Positions 38,756 through 49,770 of a stretch of DNA of 64,000 nt are shown in pieces (the stretch's first letter is position 1; every line of letters starts with the position of its first letter). The notes below the pieces were generated by a model. That model was not told the DNA's origin, did not search any database, and worked only from the letters and a program-made list of their open reading frames with translations. This DNA is from Ascoidea asiatica JCM 7603 (taxonomy: Eukaryota > Fungi > Ascomycota), in the NCBI GenBank assembly GCA_001600695.1, contig BCKQ01000002.1, positions 191,623-255,622 on the forward strand, in the 5' to 3' direction. Both the position numbers and the translations under genes were made by a program.

Positions 38756-39738
38756 TTCAATCAAGAGTTAGAATGTTTGTAATATACTGTATATTATAGG
38801 TACTTTTTTTTCTTAAAAAATAAATCATGAATATTTAATTTAAATAAAAGTAAATACTGACGCAAGAAGCCTTCAAAAGCTCTGTCTACTATTAGTTATT
38901 CAATTGAGACTTCAATCTAGTATGTCACGTGTATATATACAGCACTGTAAGCTATTGTTTTTAAATGTTTTCAAGTAACATGACTGATGAAAAGAACAAG
39001 AAAGTTACCCTGCTGAAGAAATGGACTTTGTCGTGAAAAGAACATGCAATTTGAAAATTGAAAAAATCCTAAAATAAAAAGGTGAGTTCCTTTTTACAAT
39101 TTATAACAGACTGAATAAAAAAATTTTTAAAAAAGGGTGTTAATCATATCAACTAAGGTAATAAAATTTTAGAACCATGAATTAAAACATTTTAAATAAA
39201 TATCAAAGATAAAAATCATTAAAATAAATAACACTAAAGAAAAGTTAATCAAATTAAATAGGTAAACCTTGAAGGATAATTTATTTTTTTCTTTGACACA
39301 GAAAACTAAACTATCCATCAAGACTTTTACAAAACTAATTGGCATCTACCTTATGGATGCCAAATAGTTTTACCTGCAAAAATTACTAAACATATAGAAG
39401 AGCCGAAGGGCTAAAATTAACAAATAGAATTATTTATTAAAAAATTTAAAAAAAAATGAGCGTTGAAAAAAGTGAAAATGATCTTACTTAGAGTAAGTAA
39501 ACTTGCAAAAGTGATTAAATGAATTTACATTGCAAGTCCAAATTAAGAAAAGTGCAAGAACCTCGAGAAAGAATTGAATAATACCGAGTGTTCATATATA
39601 AATAAGCTAGAAATGAAAAAGAAATAAAAGAGAAAATGTAAGAGAAAATGAAAATGAAGTTGAGAAAGAAAATGAAAGCGTAACTGTAAAAGCATGAATA
39701 GAAATTTACTCAAGAATATCAAAAATCCATTTGTTTTT

Positions 39739-41356: not shown

Positions 41357-43399
41357 ATGGTTCAACAGCAATTGCATTTGCCTTTTCAGTCAATATCAAC
41401 TCAGTCTAATAATAAAACTTTTGAAACAAATAATGATATAAAGAAATTTAATGCATGCTCAAAAATTAATATCGATGAAAAAGAAAATATTAATTCTCAA
41501 CTAGATATTAGTTCTGGTACAATTGTTCTTACTGATGAATCTGATTCAGATGTTGAATCAAACTCAGATTATGAGTTGATAGAAGTAATACAGGACTCTA
41601 ATAAATCAGATAAAACTGATGGAAGTACCTCCAGAAAAATTTTATGTGGAACAGAGCTTTCAAATGATTGCCCAAATAATACTTCCAGAACCACTACAAC
41701 CACTACTACTTGCATTAGTAATAATACTGTTATTAATAATGCTCCTACTAAAAAGGAGTTACTAAAATTGAAGAACTTACAGAAAAGAAAAGAAAGAGAT
41801 CGAATGAGAGAAATCCAGCGGAAGAAAAATGGAGAAATTAAGAAACAATTACAAAAAAGAAGAGATGAAGAGAAAATGCAAAAAGAAGAAGAAAAAAATA
41901 GACTTAGAAAAGAGAAAGAAGAGGAGAAAAACAAACTTAAACTAGAACGAGAAGAAAAAAAGCGAAAACTTGAACAAGAGCGATTCACTTTGAAGCAAGA
42001 ACGAGAATATAAAAAAAAAAGAATAGAGGAAATGAAAAGAAAAAAAATTGAGTTTGAACAAAAGTCTCAAAAGAGAATAGGTAGTTTCTTTCAAGTAATT
42101 TCTTCTCCTATATCCAAAACTTATAGCGAACAATTTTCTACAACAAAATCAAGAGACTTTGAATGTAAAATCAGCTCAGAAAAAATTCCATTTCCTACTT
42201 TGATTAGCTCGCAGGAGAATGAGTTAACTTCAATATCTTCAAAGCCTATTTTTTTTGAAAAATACTTTTTAGATTTTTACTTGAAAGAGAATTGCCATAT
42301 ATCCCCTCTTTACCAATGTTCCGACTTACAGCTTAAAGACTCAATATCAATATTCGACTCTAAGGCGAGTTTTAATAATTCGAGAAAGAAAAGACAGGTG
42401 GCTAACATGAAAAAATGGTTTATCAAACAAAATTTGGAAAGAGGATTTCAAATTTCTTCTACTGCTTCTGATATTGTCGATTCAATCAATAGTTCTCAGA
42501 TAAGTGAAGAGAATATAAAAAAAAAAATATCACACCTTTCAGTCAAGTATTTATTGTTTTATGAAAATATCAGACCCCCTTATTGCGGAACTTTTTCCAA
42601 AGACCCTTCAATTATTTCTCCTTTAAATCCTTTCAATACAAAAAAAACAGGTCTTACGTATGACTACGATTCCGACAATGAATGGGAGGACTCTCAAGAA
42701 AATGAAGAAGGTGAAGAAGAAGACTTAGATGTTGAAGGTTATGAAAGTGATGATGATGTAAATGAAGATGGGCTGGATGAGTTAGACGATTTTGTGACAT
42801 TAGATGATCAGGAAGGCGGTCCTCAGAGGAGAATTATTGTACCTTTACGCCCTTCCGTTAAAGTCAACAAATTTGATTACAGGGATGAAAACTATCAAAT
42901 ATTTGATTCTATGCATGCCGAGATATTACTAAACAATTTGAATTTCCCCATAAATCCATTTTTCAACTATTGGGAAACTGATCCACCTTTAAAAAATAAA
43001 GTATGCTTAAAAAGACAACTTATAAACGATAATTCAACTAAAGCCACTTTGGAGAATTGTTGTCAGGCTGTAGTTTCCCATTCTGAACATAAGGACAGTT
43101 TAAAACATTCATTGTCTAGCGACTTTTCTAATTCTCAAGTGAAGAAAAAACAAAAGAATGGTATTAGAAGCATGATAACTAACAAAGATCATTTGCTTTT
43201 GATTTGTGAATATATTTTAGAGAATAATGACTTTAGTTTAGTTACATTAGTGGAAGTTCTTACAAAAGAACTCAATCAATATAGCAAAGTGACTATGAAA
43301 TATACAATAGAAGAATTAGCAAAAAAAGAAGTTTATGGTAACCAAAGAAAATGGATTATCAATTCAAATATTTATAATAGACTAAAGTTGTGTTCTTAA
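41357..43399 (+). CDS. RLF2: Chromatin assembly factor 1 large subunit (Cac1)
   Basis: KER charged helix, PIP-like QKRIGSFF, FYENIRPPYCGT, YDYDSDNEWE, acidic ED tract, C-terminal winged-helix-like region. Confidence 0.92.
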   Translation: MVQQQLHLPFQSISTQSNNKTFETNNDIKKFNACSKINIDEKENINSQLDISSGTIVLTDESDSDVESNSDYELIEVIQDSNKSDKTDGSTSRKILCGTELSNDCPNNTSRTTTTTTTCISNNTVINNAPTKKELLKLKNLQKRKERDRMREIQRKKNGEIKKQLQKRRDEEKMQKEEEKNRLRKEKEEEKNKLKLEREEKKRKLEQERFTLKQEREYKKKRIEEMKRKKIEFEQKSQKRIGSFFQVISSPISKTYSEQFSTTKSRDFECKISSEKIPFPTLISSQENELTSISSKPIFFEKYFLDFYLKENCHISPLYQCSDLQLKDSISIFDSKASFNNSRKKRQVANMKKWFIKQNLERGFQISSTASDIVDSINSSQISEENIKKKISHLSVKYLLFYENIRPPYCGTFSKDPSIISPLNPFNTKKTGLTYDYDSDNEWEDSQENEEGEEEDLDVEGYESDDDVNEDGLDELDDFVTLDDQEGGPQRRIIVPLRPSVKVNKFDYRDENYQIFDSMHAEILLNNLNFPINPFFNYWETDPPLKNKVCLKRQLINDNSTKATLENCCQAVVSHSEHKDSLKHSLSSDFSNSQVKKKQKNGIRSMITNKDHLLLICEYILENNDFSLVTLVEVLTKELNQYSKVTMKYTIEELAKKEVYGNQRKWIINSNIYNRLKLCS

Positions 43400-44000: not shown

Positions 44001-47000
44001 TCAGTAAGGTAAGACAGACCTGTATTCTTTTGGAAATTGACCATCGGGGCTTTGAGCTTGCGAACTAATTTGTTGTTCATTACCAGATTTTTCCTGTTTA
44101 AAACTCAAAGAATCTGAAATTTGATAATTTTGAGAATTATGCTGGGGATCCAAATAAGTTTGGGAGATTTCTGAAGGATTTGAATGGCTGGAAGAACCAT
44201 TTAATTGTGAACTTTGGGCTCTATTTATGTTTTTGAAAGACCGAGTTTCTAGTGGGGGGATAGGAGACGACCCATTTAATAAATTATTGTTTGTATTAGG
44301 TATATAGTGCATATTGACATTCAAATTTATGCCCATATTCATTGAGTCGTTTAAATTGTGTAAATTTGGATGAATTGGATTTCCTAACATAATGGCTTCT
44401 GAAAGAGAATTTGACAAGGAATCTTGTATTTCATTAGAAATCGTGTTCGTCATATGATTTGAAAGACCATTACCAATCGAGTTTTTCAAGGAACTATTGA
44501 AAGACAAATTTTGGTTTATGGAGCGGTTTATCTCTGTAAACATTTCTGGATTCCTTTCTAGGTTCTGACCTATATTTCCTAAAGCCCTGGGGTCATTAAC
44601 ATCAGTAGTATCTAAATCTGCTGCAACTCTCATTCTTTTTCTTTGATTATTTATGTCAGTGAATTTTTTAGAAGGCGTAGCGTTCTCGTCCAACTTTCTG
44701 ATACTATTACTTGCTATTTTCGAAATTTTATTGATTTTACTATTGAGTCTATTTTTCTTTTCTAACAATATAATATTTCTTGAAATGTGTGGATGATTAT
44801 TCTCGTCATTTGCTGAATTATTTTGGGTGCCATTAGATTGGAGTTTAGTCCTATTATTGAAATTTTCGATATATGATTCGTTTGAAATATTAGAGTAATC
44901 TTCGGATTTTGATTCATTTTTAACCTCAAGCTTATCATGGAATGAGAAAACTTCTCGATTTTCTGTGCTATCCATATTGTTCCAATTTTTTAGCACTGAA
45001 TCTTCACTTAACTGCTTAACAAAGCTATCTTTTGAGATAGTAATGAAATTTAGTAGAAACGCTTTTTGATCTTCGTTTAAACTAGTTGGTTTGATTGCTT
45101 TAACGAAAGTTTGAGCAATATTGCAAGTTTCGGTTACATCGTTTATTTTACTCAAATGATCCTTGATATTTCCGTATTCCTTAAGTTTAAAGTTAGTTAA
45201 TGATTCTATATCTATTTCTCCATCAAGGCCTAGCGAAAGACTAGAATTAGATTCTCGTTGAAAAAAATTTTTATATGCAAAAGATGTTAGTCTGTTTGGA
45301 TCTAGTGGAAAAATTCCTGAATCCTTGAATCCTTTTAGGACCTTTCTTGAAGTTAATGAACGGTTTTTGGCTTTAAAATATAGTTCTATAGCTTCAAATA
45401 TCGATAAAATGTATAATCGATTTTCCATGTTATTATGTTCTTCAGAATTATTGATACTTTTATTGTTTTGGTTTTTATTCTCAGCTCCTTCCATTAAAGG
45501 TTTAATTAGGCTATTAAGAGTCTCTTTCAAAGTTTTAAAAATTCCGAGATCTAAGGGTTGAATTGTATTTTCATTCAACTTTAAATTATTCAAGCTTGAC
45601 TGATTAATATCATTATCTTTGTTAGAAAACGAATTGGTAGAAAAAGAACGAGATGCTGGATTAACTGAAGGTAGAATAAATAGAGTAACATTAGCTAGTT
45701 TACATGTTTTTATAAATTTATAAGAGATAAAAGAATTTGAGTTAACAGCGTCACAGATTAGCAATCTTTTAGGGCCAAAATTACCTGTTAAAGGTAAAAA
45801 ATGGTTAACTAGCCATTCATATGCCGAATCTGGGGTGGGAAATCCAGTATCAGTCAATTGAGCATAGCATTGAGAATGTTTTGCCCTGATTTTTGCTTTC
45901 AATGAATCTAATGATAACTCACTGTTATAGTTGGAAGATGTTTTTAAAATTACCGAGGAAGGAAGGAATGATCCATTTGAACAAATGCATTCAAGAAAAG
46001 ATATTACATATCTATCTTGACATTTCGAAGGGAAAACAGCAAATCTATCTTTAAAATCATAAGAAGTTAATATCGAAAACCTTTTATTAGAAACACTTTC
46101 AAATTTGGTAACATTAGAATTACTGACTTCTGATTTTGATTTCAATTTTCTTTGAGACAGTTTTTTACACTCTTTTTGAGACAATTGACAAATTTGAGGA
46201 TCAGTTTGTAGATCAGTTTGAAGATCGGCTTCTGAATTGAATTGAAATATTTGCTGTTGATTCACTTGAGATTGGCTTGAATATAAAAGTGAAATTTGAT
46301 CAAAATTGAATATAGAGTTTGAATCAAATTTTTCAAGCTTTATCAATTCTTCAAAATCATGAACCCAGGTTATTATATTTGTAGTATCAGAAGTAGAAAT
46401 GTTATTAATGTTATTATCACTATTAACTTTATTAGAGAAATTATGCTTTTGATCAGAATTTTCAGTTGAGGGAATATTCAAAGAATTACCTAAAAATTGA
46501 TTGAAAGAATCTGAATATGAGGAATTACTCAAATTGTAAGTATTTGAAAAGTTAGATGTACCCTTAGAAGAATTAAAAGGTGTTAATATTGAAGGATTTG
46601 AAGGTACTGACTGAATTTTATTATTTTTTGTGAAATGTAAGTTTGGCTTTCTTGAAATAAATCGATGAACATATTCAATAGTTGTATAATGCTTTTCATT
46701 GGATAATTTATTGGGTATGGAGTATAATTTTTTTGGTCTTTTATTTTCAGACCTTTCTAAAATTATTTCATCATAAAGATTCAAAAAGCCATAAACATCG
46801 GGAGGAGAACCAATTTTAGACCAGGAGTTAATTCTATAAACTAAAGAGTTTTCTTCATCAGGAGATAAATTTTGTTGGGATACATGTGCTAAGTAAAAAG
46901 GTTTTGTTTCACCATTTTTTCTTCTTAAGCATGTTCTTCTGTTTACTTCAAATAATTTTTCAACTAATTGCCAAGTAGCGGTTTTATTATTTTCTTTATA

Positions 47001-47069
47001 TTCAATAGCTTTTTTTATTCTTTCTTCTTTTTCAAGTATTTGATGTATCTTTTTTGAATTCTTGGCCAT
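44001..47069 (-). CDS. pogo/Fot1-family transposase-derived protein (HTH + CENP-B-type HTH + DDE_1 domain + low-complexity tail); likely domesticated
   Basis: EERIKKAIE...FEVNRRTCLRRKNG...AHVSQQNLSPDEENSLVYRI...GSPP; IFNFDQISL; SFLECICSNGSFLPSSVILK; GFPTPDSAYEWLVNHFLP; RLLICD; IQPLDLGIFKTLK; KGFKDSGIFPLDP. Confidence 0.88.
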   Translation of the reverse strand: MAKNSKKIHQILEKEERIKKAIEYKENNKTATWQLVEKLFEVNRRTCLRRKNGETKPFYLAHVSQQNLSPDEENSLVYRINSWSKIGSPPDVYGFLNLYDEIILERSENKRPKKLYSIPNKLSNEKHYTTIEYVHRFISRKPNLHFTKNNKIQSVPSNPSILTPFNSSKGTSNFSNTYNLSNSSYSDSFNQFLGNSLNIPSTENSDQKHNFSNKVNSDNNINNISTSDTTNIITWVHDFEELIKLEKFDSNSIFNFDQISLLYSSQSQVNQQQIFQFNSEADLQTDLQTDPQICQLSQKECKKLSQRKLKSKSEVSNSNVTKFESVSNKRFSILTSYDFKDRFAVFPSKCQDRYVISFLECICSNGSFLPSSVILKTSSNYNSELSLDSLKAKIRAKHSQCYAQLTDTGFPTPDSAYEWLVNHFLPLTGNFGPKRLLICDAVNSNSFISYKFIKTCKLANVTLFILPSVNPASRSFSTNSFSNKDNDINQSSLNNLKLNENTIQPLDLGIFKTLKETLNSLIKPLMEGAENKNQNNKSINNSEEHNNMENRLYILSIFEAIELYFKAKNRSLTSRKVLKGFKDSGIFPLDPNRLTSFAYKNFFQRESNSSLSLGLDGEIDIESLTNFKLKEYGNIKDHLSKINDVTETCNIAQTFVKAIKPTSLNEDQKAFLLNFITISKDSFVKQLSEDSVLKNWNNMDSTENREVFSFHDKLEVKNESKSEDYSNISNESYIENFNNRTKLQSNGTQNNSANDENNHPHISRNIILLEKKNRLNSKINKISKIASNSIRKLDENATPSKKFTDINNQRKRMRVAADLDTTDVNDPRALGNIGQNLERNPEMFTEINRSINQNLSFNSSLKNSIGNGLSNHMTNTISNEIQDSLSNSLSEAIMLGNPIHPNLHNLNDSMNMGINLNVNMHYIPNTNNNLLNGSSPIPPLETRSFKNINRAQSSQLNGSSSHSNPSEISQTYLDPQHNSQNYQISDSLSFKQEKSGNEQQISSQAQSPDGQFPKEYRSVLPY

Positions 47070-48195
47070 AATTCTTTTATAAAGACAATTTTTTTTGTTT
47101 TCTTTTCAATCCTACTGTAAAAGTAGCTGTTTTTCTAAAATTTTGAAAATGCTAAAATACTTTTTAAATGCTATTTTGGGCAATTCATTATACACTAACA
47201 AAAGCTGTAAGATTTAATTATAAACAAATCAAATTTATATATGAGTAGCTCAAATTATTAATATCTACTATTATTAGGAGTTTTGAGAAGGTAAAGTTGA
47301 AATTGATAGGTTAAGGAATTATGCTAGAAAATATTACTCAATAAGTTTTAAATCCTCAACGAAATTAAACATATGTTTTTGTTCAATATAACGATTAAAA
47401 TCAATAAACAAGGAGAAAAACAAAATTGGAGTTAAAGTTTCCCTAATAAATAAGTCTAATACAATCAAACAAATATCCTCACTTTTTAATAAAATTCAAC
47501 CATAATCTGCTTACAACAAATCATAGTAACTGTTTTTTTGGTTAACGGTAACATAAATTACCTTTTTAATCACATTTAGCGTTATCGTTAACGTTAAAGG
47601 ATATCTGCACCACCCACGCAATTTCTAAGAAGACTTTGGTTCGGCCGTGGAGTGCGTATATCTAAATATTTGTGCAGACTTGCCAGCAATCCCTGCGACA
47701 CCAGGACCAGGTGTACGCACGTTAGCATTTTTTGGGAACCAAAAACAAAATCCATATATTTGGCGATGTAGTTTTGAATTGCACTTCTTAGGATGTTTTT
47801 TGTTAGTTTATAGGACAGTTCATTGCTTCGGTGTCCCATTTAAGTGCAAGTTTTTTGAAAAACATTAAAAGACTGTCTTGCCACTAACAAAGATGTCTCC
47901 GATATGTCCAGGGCCTTTATTATTACACTTTATTGTAGTTTAAACACTTACCCCGTTATCTAGCCACCTGATCCGTAGTTTATCTGGAAGCTAAGTATCG
48001 CGCATTTGCAAATTGCATCTTTTAAATAAACCTATAATTCTTATTGGAATTCTTATGAAGAACCAAAATATACTTTACTTGATTAATTATTCTAAGCTTG
48101 TTCTAAAGAATAATACACTATTTTTAAACAAAACGTAAAGTTACTCATAAGTTATATCATTTCACTTTAAATTTAATATATCAAAAATTAAAATA

Positions 48196-49770
48196 ATGTC
48201 TCAATCACAGGGTTGCTTTTACATGTCTTCGACATCAGAAGCTATTCAAATTTCTTTGAAAGGCAATAAGACACTTGTTGTATTTGTAACCAATGATAGT
48301 TCAAGTTCAAATCATTGGGGTGACAGTTTATTAATTCAAAATGAGTCCTCAGCTGTAGAAAACAAGAACATTCAAAAGGATGATAAGTTAATATATAGTA
48401 CTTTTGTTAATCATTCAATTTTTTTGAAATTAATTGAAAATTCAATTGATTTCAAACATTTTAATCAAATTTTTAAAGATATTAAAATTCCTTCAATATA
48501 TTTAATTCAAAAAGGAAAAATTTTACATATATTTCAAGATCTGAATTTGAAGAAAAAAGAATTTAATGCAGAATTGGTTTCTCTTTTTAATATTAAATTA
48601 CCCATAACTTCAAATAATATGCAGTTAAAAGATGTAAAAAAGGAAGAAAATGAAGTTAATAAATATAGAAAAATAGTTTTAAAACATAAAAAAGAGGAAG
48701 AGGAAGAAAAGGCTAGAATTTTAAGATTATTAAAAGCAGATCAAAAGGAGAGAAGATTATCGAGAAGTTCTAATCATTCTCCAACAATTGATTCAAAATC
48801 TAACAACTCAATAAATAACAAAAATACTAGAAGTAATAGTTTAAATCACTTTTCTAGTAAAAATGAATGTTATTTATCAATAAAATTATTCAATGGTCAT
48901 ACTATAAAACATGAATTCAAAAGTAATCAGACTTTAATGGATGTTAGAAACTGGATTGATAATTATAGTGGCAATGAAAATGGTGATAATAATGACAATT
49001 ATAATACTAACAGTGATTATAATGTTAATAATAGCAATAAAACTAATAATAATATACCCTACAATTTTTATAAAAATTTGGAAAGAAAAACATTTTCTGT
49101 AACGGAAGAGAATTCGAGTTTAAAAGAGCTTGATTTATTGCCAAGATCAGTACTTATTTTAAAACCAATAACTAAAAAATATTCATCAGCCTATCCAGAT
49201 AATAATAATAATATTAATAATAATTTTAATAGGGGTGGAATATTTGGAAAAATTAGTAATTTAGTTTATTCATTTCTTGGATATAATATTAATGAAGAAA
49301 ATTATAACAATAATGGTAATGGAAACGAAGAAAATATTATTCCAAATGATGAGAATAAACATAAAGAAAATAATGACTATAATGAGCAGTCTAAAAATAA
49401 AGAAAACTTCGGGAATAATAGAAATAACAATACTATAATGGATTCTAGTGCAGATTATGCTAATGAAAATATGTCTTTTAGTAATAACTTAAATATGGTA
49501 AATGACGATAATAAGAATATTAAAATGAATAAGAATAAGAGTCAAGAAGCAATTTCATTTCACGGAAATTTATCTCAATCATCATTATTTTCAATCAGTA
49601 ATTCAACAGAGGGTTTGAAAACCATTCATTCCAATAACTCCAATAATAAAAACGATAATTGTAACTCCAAAATATCCCAGGACTTAATGAATAAAAATTT
49701 GAAAAAAAAAAAAAATGAAAGATTGACATATAATGGGAATTATTCTAATCTTGAAGACGATAAAAAATAA
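48196..49770 (+). CDS. UBX7: UBX-domain Cdc48 cofactor (Ubx6/Ubx7 type)
   Basis: EKARILRLLKADQKER, CYLSIKLFNGHTIKHEF...TLMDVRNWID, SLKELDLLPRSVLILKP, C-terminal TYNGN. Confidence 0.8.
   Translation: MSQSQGCFYMSSTSEAIQISLKGNKTLVVFVTNDSSSSNHWGDSLLIQNESSAVENKNIQKDDKLIYSTFVNHSIFLKLIENSIDFKHFNQIFKDIKIPSIYLIQKGKILHIFQDLNLKKKEFNAELVSLFNIKLPITSNNMQLKDVKKEENEVNKYRKIVLKHKKEEEEEKARILRLLKADQKERRLSRSSNHSPTIDSKSNNSINNKNTRSNSLNHFSSKNECYLSIKLFNGHTIKHEFKSNQTLMDVRNWIDNYSGNENGDNNDNYNTNSDYNVNNSNKTNNNIPYNFYKNLERKTFSVTEENSSLKELDLLPRSVLILKPITKKYSSAYPDNNNNINNNFNRGGIFGKISNLVYSFLGYNINEENYNNNGNGNEENIIPNDENKHKENNDYNEQSKNKENFGNNRNNNTIMDSSADYANENMSFSNNLNMVNDDNKNIKMNKNKSQEAISFHGNLSQSSLFSISNSTEGLKTIHSNNSNNKNDNCNSKISQDLMNKNLKKKKNERLTYNGNYSNLEDDKK

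Follow-up and report, generated by a model that had tools for sequence, protein, structure and literature searches.

The open reading frame at 44001..47069 (-) of the window, the whole 64,000-nucleotide stretch of Ascoidea asiatica DNA that was analysed, almost certainly derives from a Fot-type pogo transposase and is a domesticated host gene (hereafter the target gene). Domestication, which had been proposed in a preliminary description made from the sequence alone, is borne out by the single copy of the gene, its lack of TIRs, a syntenic ortholog in Ascoidea rubescens and purifying selection.

The target gene and its neighbourhood

The target gene is a single-exon gene coding for 1022 aa. 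The minus strand reads through 44001-47069 with zero internal stops, in agreement with the intact frame described earlier. The gene does lie between CAC1 and UBX7, as had been noted, with gaps of 601 and 1126 bp, respectively. CAC1 (41357..43399, +) is convergent with it, while UBX7 (48196..49770, +) is divergently transcribed and shares with it the upstream region 47070-48195; both arrangements are the same in A. rubescens. GC3 and CUG avoidance of the target gene resemble those of its host neighbours.

Comparison of the target upstream region between A. asiatica and A. rubescens has found shared motifs no better than chance, and the TIR of the pogo element L022 was likewise unmatched there. 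Both Ascoidea species have a TTACCCC-like site, presumably of the Reb1 type, ~240 bp ahead of UBX7 (~47945-47955 in the window); it is statistically not significant.

A syntenic ortholog in Ascoidea rubescens

An intact ortholog coding for 1142 aa occupies the syntenic site in A. rubescens (KV454491.1, L037:5641-9069). The locus was reached by walking along KV454491.1 from ERG9 (XP_020044893.1; the ERG9 reference query was a single open frame), and five genes have a common order in both species: CAC1(+), target(-), UBX7(+), a C2H2 zinc finger gene (+) and ERG9(+). Absence of the gene at this site in close relatives, an outcome considered in the preliminary description, is thus not what was found.

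The GenBank annotation of the ortholog calls only the last 260 of the 1142 aa and lacks the first ~880 residues, so protein searches miss it. A first reading, "no ortholog", was overturned on this ground, the annotated gene call being truncated; by accession order, this call is probably ODV58583. A word search and a full-library phmmer search with the target protein returned only distant transposases (best E 6e-12). Truncated A. rubescens gene calls fall at low-complexity genes; the public call for the zinc-finger gene at L037:12476-15223 of KV454491.1 covers 62 of 915 aa.

The capture occurred in an ancestor of A. asiatica and A. rubescens, which split ~100 million years (My) ago, the split between Ascoidea and Saccharomycopsis being dated to 190-230 My (PMC6041473). 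In the more distant yeasts GCA_000960405.1, Saccharomycopsis crataegensis and two Logan yeasts, CAC1 and ERG9 are flanked by different genes and nothing there matches the target; these neighbourhoods therefore do not date the insertion. A metagenome scan with the target gave no match.

Copy number, terminal repeats and origin

Searching the whole genome with the target protein and DNA has found no locus besides the target itself; the HTH region alone, used as a query, added one further, weak paralog. In the TIR test the best inverted match between the target flanks equalled that of shuffled controls. The same test recovered 28/30 of the TIR of the broken pogo element L022 and hence has power in this genome, which upholds the earlier statement that TIRs are absent. 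An active Fot transposon has TIRs of ~40-60 bp with a TA/TAA target duplication, DD35D spacing and several copies or a polymorphic insertion, whereas the target has no TIRs, a spacing of 66 (98 in the ortholog) and one copy that occupies a single, fixed position in both Ascoidea species. Multiple near-identical TIR/TA-flanked copies, which had been named as evidence for an active transposon, are thus not what the genome holds.

A Fot profile built from matches to the target (L019 and L017 were not queries) gives 184 bits for the target, 182 for its Fot-type paralog L019, 148 for L017 and 20 for L018. The latter is a 1009-aa ORF on contig C5 (L018:2761-5787, -) with HTH_ABP1_N, HTH_Tnp_Tc5 and DDE_1 domains; it matches the Abp1 structure 1IUF and is a probable PDC2 ortholog. 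Its N-terminus appears to agree with that of Pdc2. In the tree, the target joins its A. rubescens ortholog with support of 99-100 and L019 with 90-92, the latter link being one where long branches meet. The target groups with fungal Fot-like matches in a tree with unresolved deep nodes and no named Fot1, Cirt or Pdc2 sequences; its rows were also limited to matches of at least 480 aa, exclude L029, L030 and most fossils, and contain the L022 fossil with its pieces linked simply by X. A single Ascoidea clade was not rejected by the AU test (p=0.61).

The nearest database relatives of the target are ordinary transposases and it has three Asp, as could be expected of a Fot transposon that is active or has inserted recently, or else of its neutral remnant. 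The syntenic ortholog and purifying selection refute this, and the single copy without TIRs also speaks against it, leaving it next to no probability; the other pogo remains in this genome, its true fossils, are broken by stops and frameshifts. A diverged PDC2 duplicate, instead of a new domestication, would explain the similar overall architecture, and the AU test leaves a grouping of the target with the Pdc2-like gene standing (p=0.25, long branches). This is nevertheless very improbable: BLAST of the target gives E=0.04 against L018 and 6e-10 against L019, the profile scores differ as given above, and the Fot motifs ECI..G, QPLD and G.FP, kept in the target, are missing from L018. Clear orthology to Pdc2, raised in the preliminary description as a competing outcome, is therefore not seen; the separate Pdc2-like gene L018 has no meaningful match to the target. 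The earlier term "CENP-B-like" suits the gene only loosely, as the donor was of the Fot and not of the Tigger/Abp1 type and a centromere role is unsupported.

Domain organisation and predicted structure

Two HTH domains occupy the N-terminus. The first, in the Psq-like position (aa 1-62, 46884..47069, -), is 87% identical to the ortholog with dN/dS ~0.05, and the second, in the Tc5/CENP-B-like position (aa 63-154, 46608..46883, -), is 90% identical with dN/dS ~0.03. The tandem had been recognised before; it is matched by the Fot-transposase profile over aa 10-153 (E=2e-21), and modelled aa 13-142 align to the CENP-B DNA-binding domain 1HLV (Z 6.3). In the Pfam search the HTH pair stayed below detection, with neither CENP-B_N nor HTH_ABP1_N, and DDE_1 was found at aa 356-468 (E=4.7e-11). 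A weak match to nSTAND_NTPase4, below the cut-off, was judged to be noise.

An Asn/Ser-rich, disordered insertion (insertion 1, aa 155-228, 46386..46607, -; 34% identical to the ortholog) separates the HTH pair from the DDE (RNase H-like) domain (aa 229-600, 45270..46385, -), which is 41% identical to the ortholog and 50% in its core (aa 332-470). The three catalytic-position Asp are encoded by exactly the codons given earlier: Asp257 (46299..46301, -; NFDQ in both species), Asp440 (45750..45752, -; the following GHxSH is gone in both species) and Asp507 (45549..45551, -; QPLD in both species). Aligned with transposases, the target has NFDQ for NMDE and DAVNS for DGHxSH and retains QPLD, which agrees with the described changes of DETG to DQIS and DGHxSH to DAVNSN. 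Insertion 2 (aa 264-331, 46077..46280, -) is unconserved, with 12% identity and pN/pS ~1. Insertion 3 (aa 471-500, 45570..45659, -) lies in the loop before QPLD and stretches the D-D spacing, which is 66 here and 98 in A. rubescens; the 66 residues, counted correctly before, compare with 35 in all of the related transposases in which the motif was measurable (37/37).

The AlphaFold model has high confidence in both HTHs and the DDE core. The Asn/Ser-rich insertions reported previously are seen in the transposase alignment, and in the model they are disordered, low-confidence loops. The modelled DDE domain superposes on the catalytic domains of Mos1, Metnase and Sleeping Beauty with Z 11-14 (for Mos1, Z 13.7 and 3.0-3.1 A across 182-191 residues).

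Behind the DDE domain lies a conserved helical region (aa 601-703, 44961..45269, -; 44% identical to the ortholog), which matches no Pfam family and is possibly a dimerisation region. It is followed by an Asn/Ser/Gln-rich disordered tail (aa 704-1014, 44028..44960, -), whose length and composition are kept while its sequence is not, and by a C-terminal motif EYRx[VI]LPY (44004..44027, -) that ends at the stop in both species. The Asn/Ser/Gln-rich tail was put at ~400 aa in the preliminary description; this holds for approximately aa 704-1014 but not for aa 601-703, which are conserved and predicted to be helical.

Selection on the target gene

Selection falls chiefly on the HTH pair at the N-terminus. 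The rates are Nei-Gojobori counts on a codon alignment of the two species, A. asiatica and A. rubescens, and all dN/dS values are approximate because synonymous sites are near saturation. Over aa 1-154 the target and its ortholog are 89% identical (pN 0.067, pS 0.685, dN/dS ~0.04). The DDE region is 41% identical with dN/dS ~0.25, the dN of the HTH region being ~7-fold lower. The whole gene has dN/dS of 0.18, an approximate value as dS is near saturation. The proposed dN/dS comparison in a sister species therefore points to purifying selection in both regions.

Among the neighbours, ERG9 is 68% identical (dN/dS 0.13), so the HTH region is under tighter constraint; the C-terminal half of CAC1 is 46% identical (0.23), and the neighbouring C2H2 fingers, at 81% identity and 0.05, are similar to the HTH region of the target. 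Since synonymous sites are near-saturated in all of these genes, the high HTH identity reflects selection and not recent transfer. Free Fot transposases have the reverse pattern: in related transposases the HTH identity is 27% and the DDE identity 36%, and the HTH value exceeds the DDE value in only 24 of 465 pairs.

Other pogo-derived loci in the A. asiatica genome

At least three further long Fot-derived ORFs are present in the genome besides the target. The nearest paralog of the target, the 823-aa L019 (L019:3430-5898, -; G000:C2 ~769-771 kb), has a triad with exact DD35D spacing, lacks a TIR and is the best candidate for retained catalysis. The 999-aa L017 (L017:2439-5435, -) has lost the first Asp and has an Asn-rich tail and no TIRs. 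The triad of the 1051-aa L031 (L031:2908-6060, +) is degenerate, and TIRs are absent as well. L031 is sister to L017 (support 96-98) and both end in a short helical or coiled segment; they are probably a domesticated pair born by duplication. The 941-aa L030 (L030:2892-5714, -) has a Psq-type HTH only, with no DDE domain and no TIRs, and a long Asn-rich tail. Two related Tc5-HTH proteins, L020 (1243 aa, L020:3244-6972, +; degenerate DDE) and L029 (545 aa, L029:3665-5299, +; HTH only), are 35% identical over the HTH and are Tigger/Pdc2-like rather than Fot-like.

L022 is a broken full copy, ~3.15 kb long, of a TIR-bearing pogo element (L022:3696-6851, G000:C15), with TIRs of ~75 bp and GTAAC/GTTACCC motifs. 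A 383-bp left end of this type of element, 92% identical, is located at 38975-39356 (+) of the window, and no right end was found within the window. The ends have at least 8 further matches in the genome. The pogo fossils L027/L028 and L024/L025 are embedded in longer duplications (5.7-8.8 kb at 98.6-98.9% identity) and are therefore segmental duplicates, not separate insertions.

It is conceivable, though on present sequence comparisons rather doubtful, that the target, L019, L017, L031 and perhaps L030 form an Ascoidea family of Fot-derived host regulators in which the target or L019 has kept the ability to cut one particular DNA site as part of a host process. If true, such cutting would be the first case of a catalytic pogo domesticate in yeasts.

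Proposed function

We favour, with some reserve, a sequence-specific, Pdc2-like transcription regulator as the function of the target; a role in gene regulation is probable because the DNA-binding end has barely changed in ~100 million years. A Fot-type pogo transposase lost its element ends and became a fixed host gene. As selection is mainly on the two HTHs, the pair very probably recognises a single DNA motif that has not changed between A. asiatica and A. rubescens. The DDE domain has preserved its fold under looser selection, and together with the helical region it would most likely act as a scaffold or dimer interface and not as a transposase; the catalytic loop is broken by insertions differing in length between A. 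asiatica and A. rubescens. By analogy, the disordered Asn/Ser/Gln tail and the conserved end motif most likely recruit transcription or chromatin cofactors. Asn-rich tails are frequent in this genome (e.g., CAC1, UBX7 and many others), so the tail alone is weak evidence for activation. The target would then be a second, independent pogo-derived transcription regulator of budding yeasts, working like Pdc2.

In fission yeast, the Abp1/Cbh proteins contribute to heterochromatin at centromeres and to the silencing of TEs (PMC4231638). The target might act like them or like mammalian CENP-B, binding centromeric DNA, LTRs or transposon ends and recruiting silencing or chromatin factors; the domain layout is the same, and many transposon remains, among them a pogo family with TIRs, are present in the genome. 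We consider this unlikely, since centromere and TE sequences change fast, which sits uneasily with HTH domains near-frozen for ~100 My. Besides, the target matches no Abp1 or CENP-B sequence while the Pdc2-like gene does match Abp1, and both Abp1 (522 aa) and CENP-B (599 aa) are without a long Asn-rich tail. Still less probable is that the target remains catalytic and serves some host DNA transaction as a site-specific nuclease or recombinase, in the manner of Kat1 and alpha3 of Kluyveromyces lactis. D257, D440 and D507 are present in both species, and the modelled fold still superposes on Mos1, with the insertions in low-confidence loops. However, the three Asp are weak evidence for catalysis, as their retention has a chance of ~0.1 at 39-55% local identity, and POGZ, though domesticated, keeps DD35D (PMC7386202). 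The loss of GHxSH and of the HxSH loop before QPLD, the discordant D-D spacings and the faster change of the DDE region also argue against catalysis, and A. asiatica, being heterothallic, does not switch mating type (PMC6692504).

Relation to known transposases and domesticated genes

The target belongs to the domesticated pogo genes, outside the Pdc2 group, the CENP-B/Abp1 group and the active Fot elements. With Fot/Fot1-family fungal transposases it shares the HTH-HTH-DDE layout, the three Asp and QPLD with adjacent motifs, at 20-28% identity over aligned columns. Those transposases are ~550 aa long and DD35D, whereas the target has 1022 aa, DD66D (DD98D in the ortholog), three insertions, a single copy without TIRs and the reversed conservation pattern.

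Pdc2/Rag3 and the target both have a whole transposase body and a long disordered Asn-rich C-terminal region. Pdc2 is pogo-related (PMC2134285) and combines a conserved N-terminal DNA-binding half with a poorly conserved disordered activation domain (PMC10246790). The donors differ, being Fot-type for the target and Tigger/Abp1-like for Pdc2; moreover, the target keeps all three Asp and has so far been found only in Ascoidea, with the Pdc2-like L018 in the same genome. CENP-B and Abp1/Cbh1/Cbh2 are also domesticated pogo transposases with a tandem HTH, but the target has no sequence match to them, lacks CENP-B_N and HTH_ABP1_N and carries the long tail.

Vertebrate POGZ, POGK, JRK and TIGD1-7 resemble the target in being single-copy, syntenic and of low dN/dS, and POGZ keeps DDD; they are of Passer or Tigger origin, and the available part of the source names no Fot-derived gene among them (PMC7386202). 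Kat1 and alpha3 of K. lactis are domesticated transposases of a budding yeast as well (PMC5499181), but they come from the hAT and MULE superfamilies and are catalytic in mating-type switching.

Domesticated pogo genes recur, as CENP-B, Abp1/Cbh, Pdc2 and twelve vertebrate genes from Tigger and Passer illustrate (PMC4231638, PMC7386202). The reach of the finding is limited accordingly, pogo domestication being well known and Ascoidea a small, non-model genus. Our literature search, covering few subscription journals, has turned up neither the target gene nor, among budding yeasts, any host gene of Fot origin, and this domestication appears not to have been described before. Annotation-based screens for TE co-option would miss the ortholog, since the A. 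rubescens model omits its first ~880 residues.

The target adds an independent, Fot-family pogo domestication, whose layout has converged with that of Pdc2 within one subphylum. Its near-frozen DNA-binding region, set against catalytic sequence that is loosening, shows clearly what a host retains of a transposase. As one genome contains at least three sister genes at differing stages of catalytic decay, Ascoidea offers a natural series for the conversion of a transposase into a regulator.
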